64,000 nucleotides of DNA from Gekko japonicus. Lineage: Eukaryota. How positions within the stretch are numbered: the first letter of the stretch is position 1; each line of letters starts with the position of its first letter. A program made the translations under genes and the position numbers. The notes beneath the pieces were generated by a model. The model saw nothing but the letters and a program-made list of their open reading frames with translations, made no database searches and was not told where the DNA came from. Location: contig NW_015165235.1 of the NCBI RefSeq assembly GCF_001447785.1, positions 1,535,590 through 1,599,589 of the forward strand. The letters run 5' to 3'. Positions 37,888-59,900 of the stretch are shown here, piece by piece.

Positions 37888-38239
37888 TTTTGTTGTTCAG
37901 TCACACAGTCGAGTCCGACTCTTCGCAACCCCATGGACTAGATCCTGCCAGGCCCTCCTGTCTTCCGCTGTCCTCTGAAGTTTGCTCAGTTTCATGTTCG
38001 TTGCATCTCTGACACTGTCTAACCATCTCATCCTTTGCCGTCCCCATCTTCTTTGACCTTCAATCTTTCCCAGCATCAGGGTCTTCTGGCAGTACATGGA
38101 TAGAAAACTGCCAGAAGTACAAGCTGGGTTTCGAAGAGGTAGAGGAACTAGAGATCAAATTGCCAACATTCGCTGGATTATGGAGAAAGCAAGAGAGTAC
38201 CAGAAAAAGCTGGGTTTCGAAGAGGTAGAGGAACTAGAT
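37888..38239 (-). mobile_element. RTE/BovB-like insertion with an inverted internal segment
   Basis: 37888-38095 (minus) is the BovB-type 3' end, KTLMLGKIEG...W..LVHGVAKSRTRL with a (CAA)n tail. 38096-38238 (plus) encodes EVQAGFRRGRGTRDQIANIRWIMEKAREYQK. Flanked by TSD AATAAGCT (37880-37887 and 38240-38247). Confidence 0.8.
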
Positions 38240-38249
38240 AATAAGCTAT

Positions 38250-50417: not shown

Positions 50418-51815
50418 AACAAGTGCCAACAGTGCCCAGGGGTGCACGCTTGGTTATATGATTCTTAAATTCCCCGCAGAAGCCATGCAGGGGGAGAAGA
50501 AATCTTAGTGGGAACTAACAGCTTTTGATGTCCTTGGAGTATATAAGCAAGAGAGGCCCTTTTACTTAAGGCAAAGGGGAAACATGCAAAGCATGATAGA
50601 TATACACTTTACTTTCTTGGTACAAAGGACTGAAGGGTGAAATTACCTATAATTCACCAACCACCATATGAGGATGTTTTTCTGTATTCTGGGTGCTGGA
50701 TTTAATTTCTGCATTTAAAACTACAGAGAATAGGGACAAAGGAATTCCTGCAGTTATCAGAAACTGAACTCTGCTGTTCACTAGACATCCATATCCTCCA
50801 TCTAAAACATTAATTCCTGAAGCACAGCTTGGCAAAGGCCTTTCGAATTAAAGTGATTATTTCTGGATTTTCAAACTTTCCTTCAGAGCAACAGACCCTC
50901 TGATTGAAAAAAGCAAGAGTATCTTCCTCTTACGCAAATTCATTACAGAGCACAGCGTGCACTAAAAGCACAGGATGTTGTTACACAACAAAGCATCTGG
51001 GAAGATTAATCCTGATTAAAAGGAGGAGGGGAAAAAATTACATGAAGAACTTCATTCGGCAAAACAGAATGGCCGCAAAATAGAAGATGCAGAAAAACAG
51101 AACAGGTATCAAGACAGACTGTACTTTAAAGATTTAAGATAACGTGCGCCTCATCTTGAGATATGTTTCACTGACCATTTTGGAGAAGCTCCTATAGCCA
51201 TTTCCCCTCTTAACAGCTCCAGCCGAAATCCATGGCCTCAGTAGCTTGGGAAACTAGTACGAATGAAGTTAACTTTGCTACAAGAGAAAATTATTTATTC
51301 CTAGCCTGGCAACTGATGCATCTCCCACTCCAATACAAGCCAGGGGAGTTCTGAAGTCAATCAAGCAGCTTCTAGTATAACCAGTTTCAATTTGGGGGAA
51401 GACAATTAATTACTTTACTTAAATATTCCAGTAAATGGTACCTTGAACAGAAGTATATCCCTCTTGAACATTACAGTCCCATCAGAAGTCACTGCAGAAA
51501 TCCTCAACTGCATTCACACGACACAGGTCAGACACACTGAGACAGCTACTCCTCAGTTGCTTTCCATTATAAGAGAGGAGGTGTGTGGAATTGCTTTTTA
51601 ATGATTATTATTTATCTGTAAATCACTCTGAGCCCACATGAGTGGGANNNNNNNNNNNNNNNNNNNNNNNNNNNNNNNNNNNNNNNNNNNNNNNNNNNNN
51701 NNNNNNNNNNNNNNNNNNNNNNNNNNNNNNNNNNNNNNNNNNNNNNNNNNNNNNNNNNNNNNNNNNNNNNNNNNNNNNNNNNNNNNNNNNNNNNNNTGGT
51801 CTTGGCATTGTAGAA

Positions 51816-51856
51816 CCTGACGTTTCGCCAGTAACTGTGACTGGCATCCTCAGAGG
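51816..51856 (-). ncRNA. Minimal type I hammerhead ribozyme of Penelope-like element type
   Basis: Minus strand reads CCT-CTGAGGA-T-GCCAGT-cacagtt-ACTGGC-GAAAC-GTC-AGG. Core CUGANGA and GAAA are intact, stem II is 6 bp, stem I is CCU/AGG, helix III is the palindromic ACGU type, and the cleavage triplet is GUC. Confidence 0.85.
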
Positions 51857-51879
51857 TATAAACACAGAAAGATGACATA

Positions 51880-52045
51880 TTTGCCGTCCCCGTCTTCTTT
51901 GACCTTCAATCTTTCCCAGCATCAGGGTCTTCTCCAGTGAGTGCTCCCTTCTCATTTGGTGGCCAAAGTATTTGAGCTTCAGTTTCATTATCTGGCCTTC
52001 CAGGGAACAGTCAGGGTTGATTTCTTTTAGGATTGACTGGTTTGA
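51880..52045 (-). mobile_element. RTE/BovB-like fragment
   Basis: Encodes KLKLKYFGHQMRREHSLEKTLMLGKIEGQRRRGRQ. Confidence 0.85.
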
Positions 52046-52377
52046 ATTGACTTATTGTTGTTGTTGTTGTCAGGATAACGTTTTATGTGATTCGTACAAT
52101 AAATGGGAATATCCACTGTAGTTTATGCAGTTCACACAAATAGGAAGGCCAGTCTTAATTCAGATTACTCTTCCCTCATGGGACATTACAGCTAGGTGTA
52201 GAGCATTAGATGTGTCTGCAAAGGCTGTTCATGTTGTTCTTCCATGCAATGTATGCTGCCCTAAGCCCTTCAGATAAAAGATGGGATCATGATAATAATA
52301 ATGTAAATAAAATACAATCAGAAAGGAAAGGAAGCAGGGAGAAAAACCTCAGAGGTCAGTCTCAGATTAAAGACTCT

Positions 52378-52506
52378 TTAATATGTTTTCTTCCAGGACC
52401 TAATATACAACTGCAGAGGTAATAAAGGACTCTTCCGGTGCAAGCTTGGATGAAATATATTGAAATCAGCTTTCTGTATTTTATTTAAATAATCCTCAAG
52501 AGCAAC
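52378..52506 (-). CDS. NDUFAF6: NDUFAF6 terminal coding exon ([42 protein letters not shown])
   Basis: Polypyrimidine tract plus AG acceptor at 52507-52508, then 42 codons and TAA. Matches the recalled human C-terminus [42 protein letters not shown]. Upstream exons were not found in the window. Confidence 0.95.
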
Positions 52507-52934
52507 CTGGAATAAAAAAGAGAGATAAACAAAGTCAGCTACACAGCAAAAGGCCACTTTACAAAGATAGGAATGAATTATCACGGTATGAAATATACCA
52601 CTCAGAAGATGTTGCACTATCAAAAAGAGAAGCAACAAAAAGGGATCAAATTCATATTTATGGCTAAAGATACAAGCCCTGAATTTCATAGAGGTCCCTG
52701 TATCAGACACTGAGAATATTGTAATTTCCATGCATTAATCTGCCCATCAGTTAAGATCATCTTCTTTATGTACCCTGACTACCAGAGGCAGGAGGCTACT
52801 GGAGAGAGGATGTACTCTGGATCACCTGATATCACTTTTAGTCACATTTTGGTGCCAGGCAACATCCATCCAATCCTATCATTGTGATCCCAGTTATTTT
52901 CTGTGGGCTAAAAAAAATGCGGAGTTCCACTTAC

Positions 52935-52991
52935 TGTGTAAAGAAAGGCAGGAAAAGCTTTAACAGGAACATTCTTTCTGAAGGACCGAGC
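52935..52991 (-). CDS. NDUFAF6: NDUFAF6 penultimate coding exon (ARSFRKNVPVKAFPAFLYT)
   Basis: On the minus strand: ...tcttccttcAG|GCT CGG TCC...TAC ACA|GTAAGT. The exon is 57 nt, phase 0/0. The peptide matches my recollection of human NDUFAF6 ARSFHKTVPVKAFPAFLQT and joins in frame to the next exon. Confidence 0.93.
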
Positions 52992-53671
52992 CTGAAGGAA
53001 GACAGAAAGCAGGTTACATTGCAAAGAATACTTCAAGCACGGAACCTATAGAAGCTGCCCGGATTCCATCTGAATATACTGCAAACTACAAAAAGATTTA
53101 TTGAACATGTCAACAGCCTGGCACTAAACAGAAAATAAAATACATACAAATTATTTGGAAATGGATGCTATGACTCTGGTATTTCCTCAGTAACTTTTGA
53201 CTAAAAGGAAAAGGATCAGGCTGTAAATCATCTTTCTTCTTCCTGCCATGCGATCATTCCAGTGATTCACATGAATTCCTTCTACTGTCAAAGAAGTTAC
53301 ATCAGTTAGCACTGTAGCCACAATCCAGGAATGAGACAGCGAGGAAGCCAGACTCTGATCTGTGCACCATCAGAACTGGTTGCTCGAGCTATTAAGACCT
53401 AGAAGGGCTTTTATTCTGTACTGGGGCAGAGGCCACAAGTAGAGACAACACAAAATTGCATCACTCTTGGGCTCTAAGGAGACTGTGTATAGTCATCTGT
53501 GCAGTCACATGCATGGATTCTGGACAGGCATAACACTCATTTGTGGGCTGCACAGACACCACAGAAAAGAGAAGAACAGAAAAGTTTTGCTTGGCTGGGG
53601 CTGGCTGACAGCTACAGTCAAAGGGGAAAAATATTTCACAGATATAACAGCATTCTGGGCATAACAGAGGT

Positions 53672-54252
53672 ATGAATGAAATTTTATTACAGCATCCAGC
53701 CAGAGCAATCCAAACACTTCAGCAAGGGGCACCAAAATAAAATATTGCAAAATATACAATATAAAAATATAGAATACACATAACAGATTCACTAAAAACA
53801 CACTAAAAAGGAGAGATTTGCAGTTTTACAAGTTAAGCCGTACTTCTTTAACGCAACGGCATGCCACCCAAAATTTAGCCACAATCTTAGTAAGAGAGTG
53901 GTTTTCATAACAGTTTATTACAATGATCCAAGTCTGTCAGCCCAGGCATCTCTTCAATAAGAGGTTGAATCAATCTATCTTGAACCTCACTGTACCACTT
54001 ACATCTAAACATCATGTGTTCAATAGTTTCTATCTCCCCAGACTCACATTTACAAAGTCTCTGTACAAGGGGAACTCTTCTGTATCTGCCCTTGAGTACC
54101 GCAGAGGGAAGAGCCTCACATCTAGCTAGTGTGAAGGCTTTCCTATATTTATTTATATCAAGGTGTGTTAGATATGCCTTCGGGACTGAACGATATCTAA
54201 TTTGATTAGGCACTCTGAATTTAGGGTATCTATCAAGATCCACTTGTCTCTC
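53672..54252 (-). mobile_element. RTE-X-like LINE, 3' part with C-terminal Cys/His motif and AATAAA-(ATTC)n end
   Basis: Encodes RKAFTLARCEALPSAVLKGRY...RLCKCESGEIETIEHMMFRC. The 3' end on minus is taataaaattcattcat. A possible GTATGA TSD lies at 53670-53675 and 56995-57000. Confidence 0.65.
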
Positions 54253-54819
54253 GACTTCCGGCGGTGCGGTGCGGCGACGGGCGGGGAGTTTTTCGAGCTC
54301 CCGACGCCCGATTCCCTTTTGCGTTCTTTGGGGCTTTCCCGGCTCCCGGGTAGCCCCACCAGACCTCCCGGAGAGAGGTCTGGGGCAAGAGGCTTTGTGG
54401 TGGCCCTTCCCGTTTTTGGCACAGCGGAGAGGTGACCACTGCCTGCCTCGAAGCAGACGCGGATGAGTGGAGGGGAACATGGCCGCCATGTTCCCCGTAG
54501 CTGCAGCCTCCGTCCTGTTTTTATCTTATCCGCTACATTGGATTACAAGAAATGAAGAAACCTTTAAGATTTAACAGTGCACACATCCTTGAGGAAATGT
54601 TGCCCCGAAAATGGTCAGCAAAAGGAGGATGAAGGAGGCGGCCAGACAAAGAGAGGCTGAGTACTTTATTCCTGTTTTGGAGTATTTGGGTCAATTTCTG
54701 TCATTCCCCTGAGAAAGTAAAACTTTATATATGTAGAGTGCTCTTTGTCCCCCAGCTTCATAAGAGGCTTGACTGTAAGTAGTAACCCTTAAAAGCTGAA
54801 GGACGTTTTCTTTTAAGAA

Positions 54820-55479
54820 ATGGCGGCTATGGGGGAGAAAGGGACGGAAGAGACATCGGAGAAAAGTTTGTTTGTGATGGACATATCTGTAGAACAGTTT
54901 ATGAAGATTATGAAAGAAGAGCTATCTAGGACGTTAAAAGAGGGATTACAAAAAGCAATAGGAAAAGCATTTGTAAGCTTTTATGAAACCCCTACTCAAG
55001 TAATTGAAATTGAAAATCAAGAATCCCCTAAAAGGAACGTGGAAGAGGCTGGAGAACTGCAGGAAGATAAAGAGGACATAGAATCACCATGTTCCCAAGC
55101 TTCAAGTCAAAAGGGGAAGAAACTAAGAGGTAGAAAGAGACAAGGAAAGACAAGAAGAAAGGGAAGGAGATATAGACTTCTATTTGTTAAAAAGGACAAA
55201 AAGAGGAAAGATGGACAAGGTCGATGTGAGACAAGGAATAAAAAAGATAAAAGGAAGGAGAGTTGGGACTTTTTGGCAAAAATCCAGAAAAGAGTGAAAA
55301 TTCGAGGGAAGGGCCAATGGTGTAAAGAAAACCAATATATAGATAGACTGGAAAAACAACATGTAGATAAGCTGCTACGAGACAAAAAGCTAAAGAATTA
55401 TAGAAATCAAATGAAATTATATGGACTATATATATGTTTGATTATATCTGTTTTGTTTGTAAGCAATGTAACAGTCTGA
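54820..55479 (+). CDS. 219-aa ORF of the non-autonomous retroposon; unknown protein (helical/acidic N-terminus, very basic middle, hydrophobic C-terminus)
   Basis: Open frame with ATG in a good context (gaaATGG). I recognise no domain, and translation is unproven. Confidence 0.4.
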   Translation: MAAMGEKGTEETSEKSLFVMDISVEQFMKIMKEELSRTLKEGLQKAIGKAFVSFYETPTQVIEIENQESPKRNVEEAGELQEDKEDIESPCSQASSQKGKKLRGRKRQGKTRRKGRRYRLLFVKKDKKRKDGQGRCETRNKKDKRKESWDFLAKIQKRVKIRGKGQWCKENQYIDRLEKQHVDKLLRDKKLKNYRNQMKLYGLYICLIISVLFVSNVTV

Positions 55480-55528
55480 AGGCTAAATTATAAAAGCTCT
55501 GTATCTATGTGAATGAAATGAATAAGAT

Positions 55529-56109
55529 AAAATGCTTAGGGAAATATTTTGGGTTGTCTTGTACTGCTTTTAAGATGTTATACAAGAATTTGGGGGAATG
55601 AAATATTCAGTTTTAATATGCATTGATTTATGGGTCCTGTCGATTTAAGTATGATATTTAGAAAATGAATTGTGGCCCTACGTATAAGACAAAGAGATAT
55701 ATAGGGTGACCAGATGCACCAAATGAAGTAATTTGAGTGTGATTGACTGTGATTTTGATATATTAATGTTTATGATATATTTCTGGGTATGGATAATTAT
55801 ACTTGTGCTCTTACAAAATGCTCATGGAAATATTTTGGGGTGTCTTGTATTGCTTTTAAGATGTTATAGAAGAATTTGGGGGAATGGAATATATAGCTTT
55901 AATATGCATTGATTTATGGGTCTTGTTGATTTTAGTATGATATTTAGAAAATGAACCGAGGAATAAGTCTGCGTATAAGACAAAGAGATATACAGAGGGG
56001 CCAGAGGCACCAAATGAAGTAATTTGAGTGTGGTTGAATGTGAAGTTATTTTGATATATTATTCTTTATGATATATTTTTGGGCATTGATAACTATATCT
56101 GGGCTCTTA
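55529..56109 (+). repeat. Diverged tandem duplication (~286 + ~295 bp) in the retroposon 3' region
   Basis: Both units begin aaaatgct..ggaaatattttggg.tgtcttgta (55529 and 55815) and align throughout with scattered substitutions. Confidence 0.85.
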
Positions 56110-56552
56110 AAAAGTGAAATGATGTAAAGAAATAAGGAGGGTCTTTGAAAATGAAAGGATGGAAAGATAAAAATAGTCTAGCCATAGAATACTAAGAATT
56201 AACGAGTTTAATGACAAGTTGAAACTAAAAGAAATATAACTGAATAACCTTCTCTAAGGGAGTTAACATGAAGAAGGTTTAGGAAGAGGAGAAAGAGGGA
56301 AATTGAAAAGTTCTCAATATTGGATGTGTGTAACTGCAGGTTGTATTTTGGTAATTTTGGTAATGGTATAGAAGGGAAAGTATGGAGTTTGAGAACTAAA
56401 TTGTGTTGTAAAGTTATGTGCAATATAGAGATAGTAGCAGAATTGGTGGGGGGTGGTGAGGGGTGGTGGGGGTTGTTTATATGTTCATATGTATGATGTT
56501 ACCGTACCTTGGTAAAGTGTTGAAAATCAATAAAAATACTTTTTTTAAAAAA

Positions 56553-56994
56553 AAGATCCACTTGTCTCTCTATATCCATTATTCTCTGTTTGAGAGCTAG
56601 TTTAGCCTGATCCCAGCTCATATCTAGAATCACCTGAGGGGAGAATCCAAGTAATTGTAATTTATTGTGCACTGATTTCAACCATTTAGATTGAAAGTTA
56701 TCCGACAGTAACAAATGGATTAATCCCTCAGGTTGAACATTCATTTTAAGCCAATAATGGAGCGAGGCCAAAGTAATTTTGGCTTCCATCTTCAAGGTAC
56801 CAGTTTCTAATCTTATTAATGCATTCGGGACACATCTCGGGACCTGAAGGATAGCTCTAAGGAATTTGGTTTGAACCCTCTCAAGAGAAGCAAAACTGGA
56901 AGAAGAGGGGCCAACTAAAGTGCCATAGAGCATTTGTGCGACTGCCTTTGCCTGAAAAAGATTTTGGGCAGCTGGAATGAAAAGAGCCCCTTTT
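56553..56994 (-). mobile_element. RTE-X-like LINE, 5' part (post-RT region), interrupted by the 2.3-kb insertion
   Basis: The ORF MLYG...LERVQTKFLRAILQVPRCVPNALIRLETG...DIERQVDL continues in frame with ERQVDLDRYPK... on the other side of the insertion. The clade assignment is tentative. Confidence 0.65.
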
Positions 56995-59900
56995 GTATGA
57001 TAAGGCTGTTATTGGCAGTTCTTTCACCTTGCGCCACCACATACTGTATGTGGGCATTTTTGGCCTAACAGAGGTACATTCTTTAACTAAATTAGCAAAA
57101 CAGGGTGCAGTTCGTCACTCTCCCCAGTGCTTAGATGAGTTGACCAGTTCCTGTACCCCTTTTACTGTGTTTCCCTGTCATTACTGCTGTGAATGCAGAG
57201 GCACTTGCACTGGCAACAGAGCATCCACAGGGAAGTTTTCTGAGCATTTTCTTCCATTAGCCACTATTTTCCCTGTATTTCCCCTAGTTGCACCATTAGG
57301 AAGATTTTAAAAAATCAGTAATTGCTATTGTGCTATTAAACATTATAAGTGCCACTGCCATAGTCTACTAATTCCTCTGAATTCCCAGCTCTCTCTCTTT
57401 TTTTAAAAAAAGATGTCTCTAACTCTTTGCATTGCAGAGATACAACAAGAAAGGTGTGTGTCTGCAGCTAAGGCAGCTAGGGACTGACTTTTTAAAAAAT
57501 GAAAACAAGGAATCCAGAATCACAGAGTTGGAAGGGACCTCCAGGGTCATCTAGTCCAACCCCCTGCACAATGCAGGAAATTCACAAATAACTCCCCACC
57601 CCCACCCCCAGTGACTGCTGTTCCACGCCCAGAAGATGACAAAAGACCTCCAGGATCTCCAGCCAAACTGGCCTGAGGGGAAATTGCTTCCTGACCCCAA
57701 AGTGGCGATCAGCATTTCCCTGGACATGTAAGAAAGGGTCACACAGTAGATCACAGCAACAGATCATTGTAATCCTATAGCAATCAGTGATTTTTATAAA
57801 GCACCACCCAAAGCCTTGTGGCGTTGTGGGAGTGAGATGGTGTGCACAGGGTGGATAAGGCAAGAAGCAAGGAAAATGGCACTGATGTGGGCAGGACCTT
57901 AAAAAATGCACACCTGCCCATCCACATGCTGTGCAAATGCACCTTGAATACGATCTTGCCAAAAAGACAATATCAAAACAGGTTTGGAAAAGTCTGGAAC
58001 AACCTTGGGGGCAATCTGAAAAGTGGACGATCGAGGCATGTCATTGTGTGGATGCTCAAAAAACCACACCCCAGGTTGGATACCAGAGCAGAGAAAAACC
58101 TTTGCCATTCCGACACTGCCATCTTCTCCTATTGAGCCAAGACAGGCTACCGGAATACCTCTGAACTGCTCTTTCCATGTGGGGGTGGGCGGGGGGGAGG
58201 GAGGGGAGACAGGAGTAGGACTTCAGCCTCCCCATGCTTCATCTCTTGGCCCTGTGATGCTGGAACAGAGAATCCACACAACCTTTACAGTACTGCATTG
58301 ACCACTCTGCAGTACGTGAACAGCAGCACAGGACCATTCAAATTGCTCAGAAGACGTACCCTGGTGATGGAGTGGGAGAAACAATGAGCAGGCTGTGCTG
58401 GTCAGGGAGCAAGGAAAGGAGAGGAGAGAAATGCAGACAGTTATCTGGCAGGCAATAGCCAGGGGGAAGACTGGGAAACAAGCAAATAGTCTAGTGAAGA
58501 AAACATTCCTGCATCCTTCACAACTTGGGCACAATTAAATAACTATCTCCTGGTGTACATTCTCTCTTTTTAAACAAAATCTTAATGATCAGGAATACTA
58601 ATTTATAAGTTCACTGGTTTCTAAGAGAACCAGTGGTGTAGTGGTTAAGAGCGATGGACTTAATCTAGAGAACGGGGTTCAATTTCGCACTCCTCCACAT
58701 GAAGCCAGCTGGGTGACCTCAGGTCAGTCACAGCTCTTTCGGAGCTCTCTCAGCCCAGAAAAAAAGTCTACCTTGTCACCTAGCGTGACGCCAATGAGCT
58801 GGACCTTAAGGCTGCCAGACAATCTTCAGATCTCCAGGCTATACTATACACAATGCTCTACAATTATTATTATTACTGGTTTCTAAGAATTCCTTTCAGA
58901 AGGTAGGAACGAGCTCTTTTGCAATAAGCCATGGGAGGAGGAAGCAGCAGAGTGTGGGGAAACTGGAGTGTGCAGTCTTGAAGGAGACAGGGCAACGGGA
59001 AGAAAGAGGANNNNNNNNNNNNNNNNNNNNNNNNNNNCTAAGTGAAGACAAAATCAAGGGAGTGCTCAAGGCAGTGAGTAGAACCTAAGTTTGGATTTAA
59101 AGGGCGAAGCAAGATAAGCGGCAACTTGATCAGACATGAATAATGAAGTCACTAAGAAGTGAGGTGGGGCTGCTCTCAGAGTGTAGGGAGACAAAAACAT
59201 CAGACAGTGAAACGAAAGTTAGGAGTTGGGAAATACAGAACTGAGTGAGCAGAAAGGCACTGGAGACAGCAGAATGTCAGATGGGTCATTTGGTGTCCTC
59301 CTAGGTCTTATGGAAGGGCAAATGCTGCCATGTTTGGACCAAAAGGCAAAGACGACAAGGAATTCCCCCACCAGAACAATATGCCTCATCCATCATGGTA
59401 ACTCTTCCAAGATGATAGCCCAGTTAGTGGTGTCATGACTTGGAAAGATGGAGCAACAGCAACAACAGAAGGAGACAAGGGTATGCCCCCTACTCAGCCA
59501 GGATTGCTTGGCCCTTCGAGGACACTCTCAGAAAGGAAAAATTCAGAGCTTGGAAAACCCATTTCTCATTTGGGGAAGCTACCTGACAGAGTTAGAATCC
59601 CCGTGGACCTGACTGACCAGCTACTACCCTGGCTACTTGACCCTCCAGCAGCCCTGCAAACCCTCCAAGATACAGAACCAAACCCTCTTAGCCCAGAAGA
59701 TCCAAGGCACATCTGTTTGAGTGGTCAGCCCCACGACAACAGGGAAAGAAAAGGTAAGAATGCTGGTTCATCCTTAGCAGACACCAGATGTATTTTAAAG
59801 CTGGGTTATTTCCTTTAGCAAGCATTGTTTCGATGCAAAATAATCAAGAAGCACACTAAAAGCCTAGCAAAACAGAAAGATTTTCAAGATGAATACACAT

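Follow-up and report, generated by a model that had tools for sequence, protein, structure and literature searches.

A minimal type-I hammerhead ribozyme motif is located on the minus strand just past the stop codon of NDUFAF6 in the 64-kb window, that is, the whole stretch of DNA analysed here. The best explanation, to which we give a probability of about 0.85, is that this motif belongs to a truncated fragment of a Poseidon-kind Penelope-like element (PLE), that the hammerhead is an ordinary one of the minimal kind, and that the fragment is a bystander to NDUFAF6, the bulk of whose mRNA ends upstream. The hammerhead would sit near the pseudo-LTR/ORF junction of the Poseidon-kind retroelement. 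A short 5′-truncated tail of this element, extending from 51874 to somewhere in a gap of N, would have been inserted roughly 0.5 kb past the end of the NDUFAF6 coding sequence, beside or within a LINE fragment, and in sense orientation by chance.

In its own element, such a hammerhead would process the element RNA either as a tandem dimer or together with the element protein. At the NDUFAF6 locus it stands as a single copy, its most stable predicted fold hides the CUGA box, and most NDUFAF6 mRNA would be cleaved and polyadenylated upstream of the hammerhead, probably via the ATTAAA at the stop codon. Taken together, the single copy, the hidden CUGA box and the upstream polyadenylation would leave no measurable effect on the gene. 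The motif would then add a further dispersed example to a ribozyme type that has been known since 2014 and is present in thousands of copies in non-mammalian vertebrate genomes. The case is also a useful negative: a core-intact sense hammerhead can lie shortly after a stop codon and still not be part of the mRNA.

NDUFAF6 exons and the hammerhead motif

The last coding exon of the gene (52378–52504, minus strand) encodes 42 residues and ends with the stop codon TAA at 52380–52378. In RNA it is spliced to the penultimate exon at 52933–52991. The junction 52504/52933 skips 428 nt with GT..AG borders on the minus strand, and it is covered by 53, 9 and 9 reads in the raw-read runs X21, X20 and X22, respectively, and by one contig of the contig run X1. 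An exon upstream of 52991 was looked for in the window and not found.

The last-exon peptide, searched alone, has matches in 31 representatives at E-values up to 0.001. The best of them, 86% identical, is a partial protein of the king cobra Ophiophagus hannah. Its alignments extend to the very C-terminus of two proteins named NDUFAF6, P0018 (residues 289–330 of 330) and P0007 (residues 200–241 of 241), and PF00494 (the SQS_PSY family) is found in five of the six matches scanned. This homology identifies the gene as NDUFAF6, complex I assembly factor 6. Pfam reports no family in the last-exon peptide alone, and an ESM Atlas search with the same exon returns unnamed clusters, with an SQS_PSY cluster appearing first at rank 22 (score 0.86), a weak lead. 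The sole match in a PDB sequence search, a heme oxygenase (E 1.4), was taken as chance.

Downstream of this exon, the minus strand from 51857 to 51815 reads as a complete minimal type-I hammerhead. It opens with the first strand of helix I, ACCU (51857–51854), followed by the core box CUGAGGA (51853–51847) and an extra U (51846) between A9 and G10.1. Helix II comprises 6 bp formed by GCCAGU (51845–51840) and ACUGGC (51832–51827) around the loop CACAGUU (51839–51833). Then come the core box GAAA (51826–51823) and C15.2 (51822), G16.2 (51821), U16.1 (51820) and C17 (51819), and the motif closes with the second strand of helix I, AGGU (51818–51815), which makes 4 bp with ACCU. The predicted cut, GUC^AGGU, falls between 51819 and 51818.

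All conserved core boxes of the minimal hammerhead are present, namely CUGAGGA, GAAA and GUC (51821–51819), as is the G10.1–C11.1 pair (G at 51845 with C at 51827). The palindromic positions 15.2–16.2, A-C-G-U at 51823–51820, have no loop. Helix III is impossible within a single copy, since A15.1–C15.2 runs straight into G16.2–U16.1.

The pattern CTGANGAN{8,30}GAAACGTC matches once in the 64-kb window and in 0 of 100 dinucleotide shuffles. A stricter descriptor of the minimal hammerhead was composed of the core boxes, an optional base after A9, the G10.1–C11.1 pair, a helix II of at least 4 bp, the palindromic 15.2–16.2 (between A15.1 and U16.1) and a helix I of at least 3 bp. It also gives one match on the two strands of the 64 kb and none in 100 block shuffles. 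Hammerheads are represented in Rfam by the families Hammerhead_1, Hammerhead_3, Hammerhead_II, HH9 and HH10. These models have no match at gathering score in the whole window, and none at E-values up to 10 on 51797–52400 (604 nt), consistent with a hammerhead that has no helix III. The sole Rfam rows on 51797–52400, SCARNA15 (E 2) and SNORA44 (E 9.7), were taken as chance.

The initial annotation had placed a core-intact sense hammerhead, cut at 51819/51818, 522 nt past the stop codon of NDUFAF6. The motif and its cut site are borne out by the sequence, the pattern scan and the descriptor; the distance is correct, with CCU beginning at 51856 and the stop codon at 52380–52378; and the gene name stands on the C-terminal alignments and on PF00494 in the matches.

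Origin of the hammerhead-bearing fragment

The minimal hammerheads of metazoan PLEs were defined by Cervera and de la Peña in 2014 (PMC4209133). As described there, they have CUGANGA, GAAA and UH boxes, one nucleotide left unpaired between A9 and G10.1, a G10.1–C11.1 pair, a helix II of 6–8 bp, a helix I of 4–5 bp, no or a very short helix III and palindromic positions 15.2–16.2, which permit dimer formation, and they are mostly dispersed single motifs from truncated elements. The features listed in that paper emerged without being imposed by the search. The motif downstream of NDUFAF6 shares with the PLE minimal hammerheads the type-I layout, the boxes, the extra nucleotide, the G10.1–C11.1 pair, the 6-bp helix II, the 4-bp helix I and the palindrome without loop 3. 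Unlike a full PLE, the locus has no visible RT/EN frame and no visible second flanking repeat, because the fragment is 5′-truncated and enters the gap of N. The sequence next to the fragment has no RT or GIY-YIG coding.

The Poseidon element PAc of Anolis carolinensis offers a published geometry for comparison. According to its description (Mob DNA 2024, PMC11167929), stem II of the PAc hammerhead begins with an ATG that is preceded by C3 and G8, and cleavage is placed 26 nt past this start codon. At the NDUFAF6 locus, C3 and G8 also come before an ATG (51847–51845, minus strand), which consists of A9, the unpaired U and G10.1; counting from this ATG, base 26 is C17 (51819). The reading frame from this ATG (MPVTVTGETSGSTMPRP...) stays open up to the gap. 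The comparison with PAc is one of geometry; the letters of the motif have no occurrence in the available text of PMC11167929.

The motif anatomy and the published geometry support the assignment to PLEs. Judged from its sequence, the hammerhead is of a known kind, an ordinary PLE minimal hammerhead of a truncated fragment; the fragment as such probably belongs to the Poseidon group. PAc insertions are reported to end 111–118 bp into the ORF (PMC11167929), and if the present family behaves as PAc, the 3′ end of the fragment would fall inside the gap at 51648–51796.

RNA reads mark out the fragment as part of a repeated, transcribed element. The hammerhead-bearing segment (51797–51874, minus strand), probably a PLE tail or the pseudo-LTR/ORF-start region, is truncated at its 5′ end and runs from 51874, in the minus-strand direction, into a run of 149 N (51648–51796), which is an assembly gap or masked sequence. 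On 51801–51877, reads at least 97% alike reach a depth of approximately 176 in X20, 9 in X21 and 50 in X22, against single digits on the gene (3–7 in X20), and reads matching the segment diverge at 51874 (127 in X20 and 9 in X21). The boundary-diverging reads and the high depth from other copies show that the fragment belongs to a family of near-identical copies, which is transcribed. The earlier proposal that a transposon donated a minimal hammerhead of the Penelope type, its helix III being palindromic, is supported by the anatomy, by the ATG/26-nt geometry and by reads from other copies. Within the sequenced 64 kb, the descriptor finds no second hammerhead and, the LINE part excepted, 51797–52100 has no second copy; a second hammerhead copy could lie inside the gap at 51648–51796.

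The family reads vary at core and stem positions. In X20, the base at 51826 (G12, minus strand) is changed in 20 of 187 reads and the base at 51822 (C15.2) in 10 of 173, so some transcribed copies have core changes. A 1-nt deletion at 51860 is present in 78 of 208 family reads.

Five bases away, on the same strand, lies a LINE-like fragment (51880–52045), putatively RTE/BovB-like. Self-comparison, reading frames and RNA reads delimit it as a piece truncated at both ends, with a coding tail that ends in LKYFGHQMRREHSLEKTLMLGKIEGQRRRGRQ. A 54-nt stretch is 98% identical to 38034–38087, where the frame continues open, and X20 reads matching the LINE part diverge at 51880 (4282 reads) and at 52045 (1256 reads). 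A search of the ESM Atlas with the LINE tail yields unnamed clusters only, and Pfam has no family for the 85-aa LINE/PLE frame. The summed depth on the LINE-like fragment rises to approximately 5000 in X20 and 2400 in X22, from other copies, and so the LINE family is abundant in transcripts.

Retrozymes are a further relative. The non-LTR retrozymes of animals are described as hammerhead repeats in tandem that originate from the pseudo-LTRs of PLEs (PMC7229834), and their monomer derivatives as dispersed (PMC7229834; preprint 10.64898/2026.07.22.740005). The NDUFAF6 locus resembles them in its PLE-related type-I hammerhead and differs in the lack of head-to-tail units, with one motif in 64 kb of sequenced DNA. 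Canonical retrozyme hammerheads have loop–loop contacts and a helix III stub, whereas the hammerhead at the NDUFAF6 locus has neither.

Cleavage and folding

Published reports describe no detectable in vitro cleavage by minimal hammerheads in single copy. A single Schistosoma minimal hammerhead gave no detectable cleavage in vitro, and its dimers and trimers had low activity (PMC4209133). The PAc hammerhead is reported not to be cleaved without the PAc protein, and no RNA-seq read ends are reported at its cut site (PMC11167929). Dimeric cleavage is attributed to Lunse et al., as cited in PMC6765202.

The hammerhead at the NDUFAF6 locus is like PAc in that read ends do not accumulate at the cut site. 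No pile-up of molecule ends at 51819/51818 reaches the threshold (five molecules together with one fifth of local depth) in the three raw-read runs, at a family-wide depth of 9 to 176. In the predicted lowest-energy fold of the monomer (−15.3 kcal/mol), the core UCUGA pairs with the UCAGG that spans the cut site; a structure in which helices I and II form has −11.0 kcal/mol, 4.3 kcal/mol above this fold. An intermolecular 4-bp duplex of ACGU with ACGU contributes only −1.7 kcal/mol. The folding z-score of the monomer (−0.45) indicates a stability that is not unusual, and the fold was not counted toward the motif being real. We infer that the copy at the NDUFAF6 locus is inactive.

The 3′ end of NDUFAF6 transcripts

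Several candidate poly(A) signals were found on the minus strand. The ATTAAA at 52377–52382 overlaps the stop codon and has a U-rich stretch approximately 30 nt downstream. It is followed by CATAAA at 52127–52122 and again at 52087–52082, and by AATAAG at 52056–52051. Past the stop codon, a canonical AATAAA first occurs at 51294–51299, beyond the hammerhead and the gap. The last coding exon itself also has a canonical AATAAA (52485–52480, L-N-K codons). In X21, five molecules begin at 52434, beside a depth of 17; this position is about 46 nt downstream of the exonic AATAAA and 56 nt before the stop codon, and the ends there may reflect premature polyadenylation or simply noise.

RNA coverage was followed on 50800–53100 in the three raw-read runs and the contig run, all of the same species label. 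Depth inside repeats represents reads from other copies and is uninformative on the NDUFAF6 locus. In three of the four runs, coverage is lost within approximately 110–270 nt of the stop codon, well upstream of the hammerhead. The summed depth of X21 is about 36 on 52417–52493, then 2.0, 1.3 and 1.3, then 0 on 52109–52185, and each of the 11 bins between 51646 and 50800 is empty. The X22 depth falls from 6.9 through 1.0, 0.7 and 0.6 to 0, and does not exceed 1.5 past the gap. In X1, the spliced contig stops at 52269 and 52109–52262 is uncovered.

In X20, the exon has a depth of 7.5, and the stretch between it and the repeat has 3.5, 5.2, 3.1 and 5.6. Beyond the gap its depth is 1.2, 3.3, 3.2 and 1.1 (51569 to about 51340), dropping after the AATAAA at 51299–51294. 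X20 also covers the last intron (0–1.9) and the preceding intron (6.2 on 53033–53100), and its mates are not clearly stranded. Low and roughly even coverage of 1–6 at 50800–51569, at 52109–52416 and in introns is seen in X20 only, and may stem from pre-mRNA, from carried-over DNA or from an overlapping transcript that is not annotated. Among the loose ends listed, none is poly(A)-tailed.

The loss of coverage suggests that the main 3′ end of NDUFAF6, with its putative poly(A) site, lies within about 20–270 nt of the stop codon, and the ATTAAA at the stop codon would be the likeliest signal for this proximal end. At most a rare long form of the mRNA remains, from X20. The poly(A) signals listed in the initial annotation (ATTAAA, CATAAA, AATAAG and the AATAAA at 51294–51299) all recur in our inventory, the exonic AATAAA being absent from that list. 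Its suggestion that the NDUFAF6 transcript may include the ribozyme is not supported. It had named polyadenylation upstream of 51856 with no read-through as speaking against the idea, and in three of the four runs the 3′ end is on that side of 51856 and read-through is slight. An effect of the ribozyme on 3′ end formation, termination or stability likewise finds no support, either in the coverage or in the literature on the inactivity of single copies.

Alternative explanations

A tissue-specific long 3′ UTR of NDUFAF6, reaching approximately 51299–51294, could include the hammerhead, and cleavage, perhaps aided by the PLE protein or by a partner copy inside the gap, could destabilise this isoform in the way of Clec2. 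The rodent Clec2 hammerhead, as described in PMC6155905, is a discontinuous type III ribozyme with a very long helix I, located inside the mature 3′ UTR, and it is common to mammals. The NDUFAF6-locus hammerhead is similar to it in following a stop codon in sense orientation, and differs in being minimal, type I, transposon-derived and, in three of the four runs, beyond the main 3′ end. It is not inside the mature 3′ UTR in X21, X22 and X1, and X20 is ambiguous.

The long 3′ UTR would account for the X20 depth of 3–6 from the stop codon to 52109 and of 1–3 past the gap, falling after 51300, with about 7 in the exon. It would also suit a core-intact hammerhead in sense orientation and the situation reported for Xenopus, where exon-overlapping PLE-derived hammerhead or retrozyme units are mostly in 3′ UTRs (preprint 10.64898/2026.07.22.740005), and protein-aided cleavage has a precedent in PAc (PMC11167929). 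We nevertheless consider it improbable. X21, which has the most NDUFAF6 reads (53 junction reads), is at zero on 52109–52185 and past the gap, and X22 and X1 agree with it. Given the intron coverage of X20, the downstream depth of this run, in a library that is not clearly stranded, may be pre-mRNA, DNA or another transcript. Single minimal hammerheads are reported as inactive in vitro (PMC4209133, PMC11167929), and the cut site has no pile-up of ends. Should the long isoform exist and undergo cleavage, nature would offer here an example of a mitochondrial assembly factor tuned by a transposon ribozyme, of which no sign was seen.

Still less probable is a conditional version, with distal polyadenylation at about 51299–51294 in some tissues and a hammerhead that is cut only in the presence of the still-expressed Penelope protein or of a second copy hidden in the gap. 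It would couple the mRNA level of a complex I assembly factor to transposon activity. A rare long isoform might end at the AATAAA at 51294–51299, its only trace being the weak X20 depth.

Elements cleaved co-transcriptionally give entry to 5′–3′ exonucleases and thus aid termination. A hammerhead past the poly(A) site could therefore cut nascent read-through RNA, the exonuclease entry aiding termination of RNA polymerase II, and its position on the transcribed strand, about 0.4–0.5 kb beyond the apparent main 3′ end, would be appropriate for this role. We hold the idea to be highly improbable, as there is no sign of cleavage, monomeric minimal hammerheads are described as inactive in vitro (PMC4209133), and read-through RNA in X21 is nearly absent already upstream of the hammerhead.

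Finally, a chance match in unique sequence that does not derive from a transposon would explain the missing Rfam match and the absence of a second copy in the window, and it is extremely improbable in view of the 0 of 100 shuffles that match in either of two tests, the hundreds of RNA reads from other near-identical copies and the presence of all features specific to PLE hammerheads.

Other repeated sequences in the window

Two further observations concern repeats elsewhere in the window. A stretch of about 30 nt beginning with ctagttcctctacctcttcgaaacccagctt occurs twice on the minus strand within 38120–38240, with the two occurrences approximately 85 nt apart, and this pair sits just upstream of the second copy of the LINE tail (37900–38088). 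Two open reading frames on the minus strand, of 206 aa (53908–54525) and 169 aa (56502–57008), look like remnants of retrotransposon coding sequence and adjoin the element at 54235–56570.
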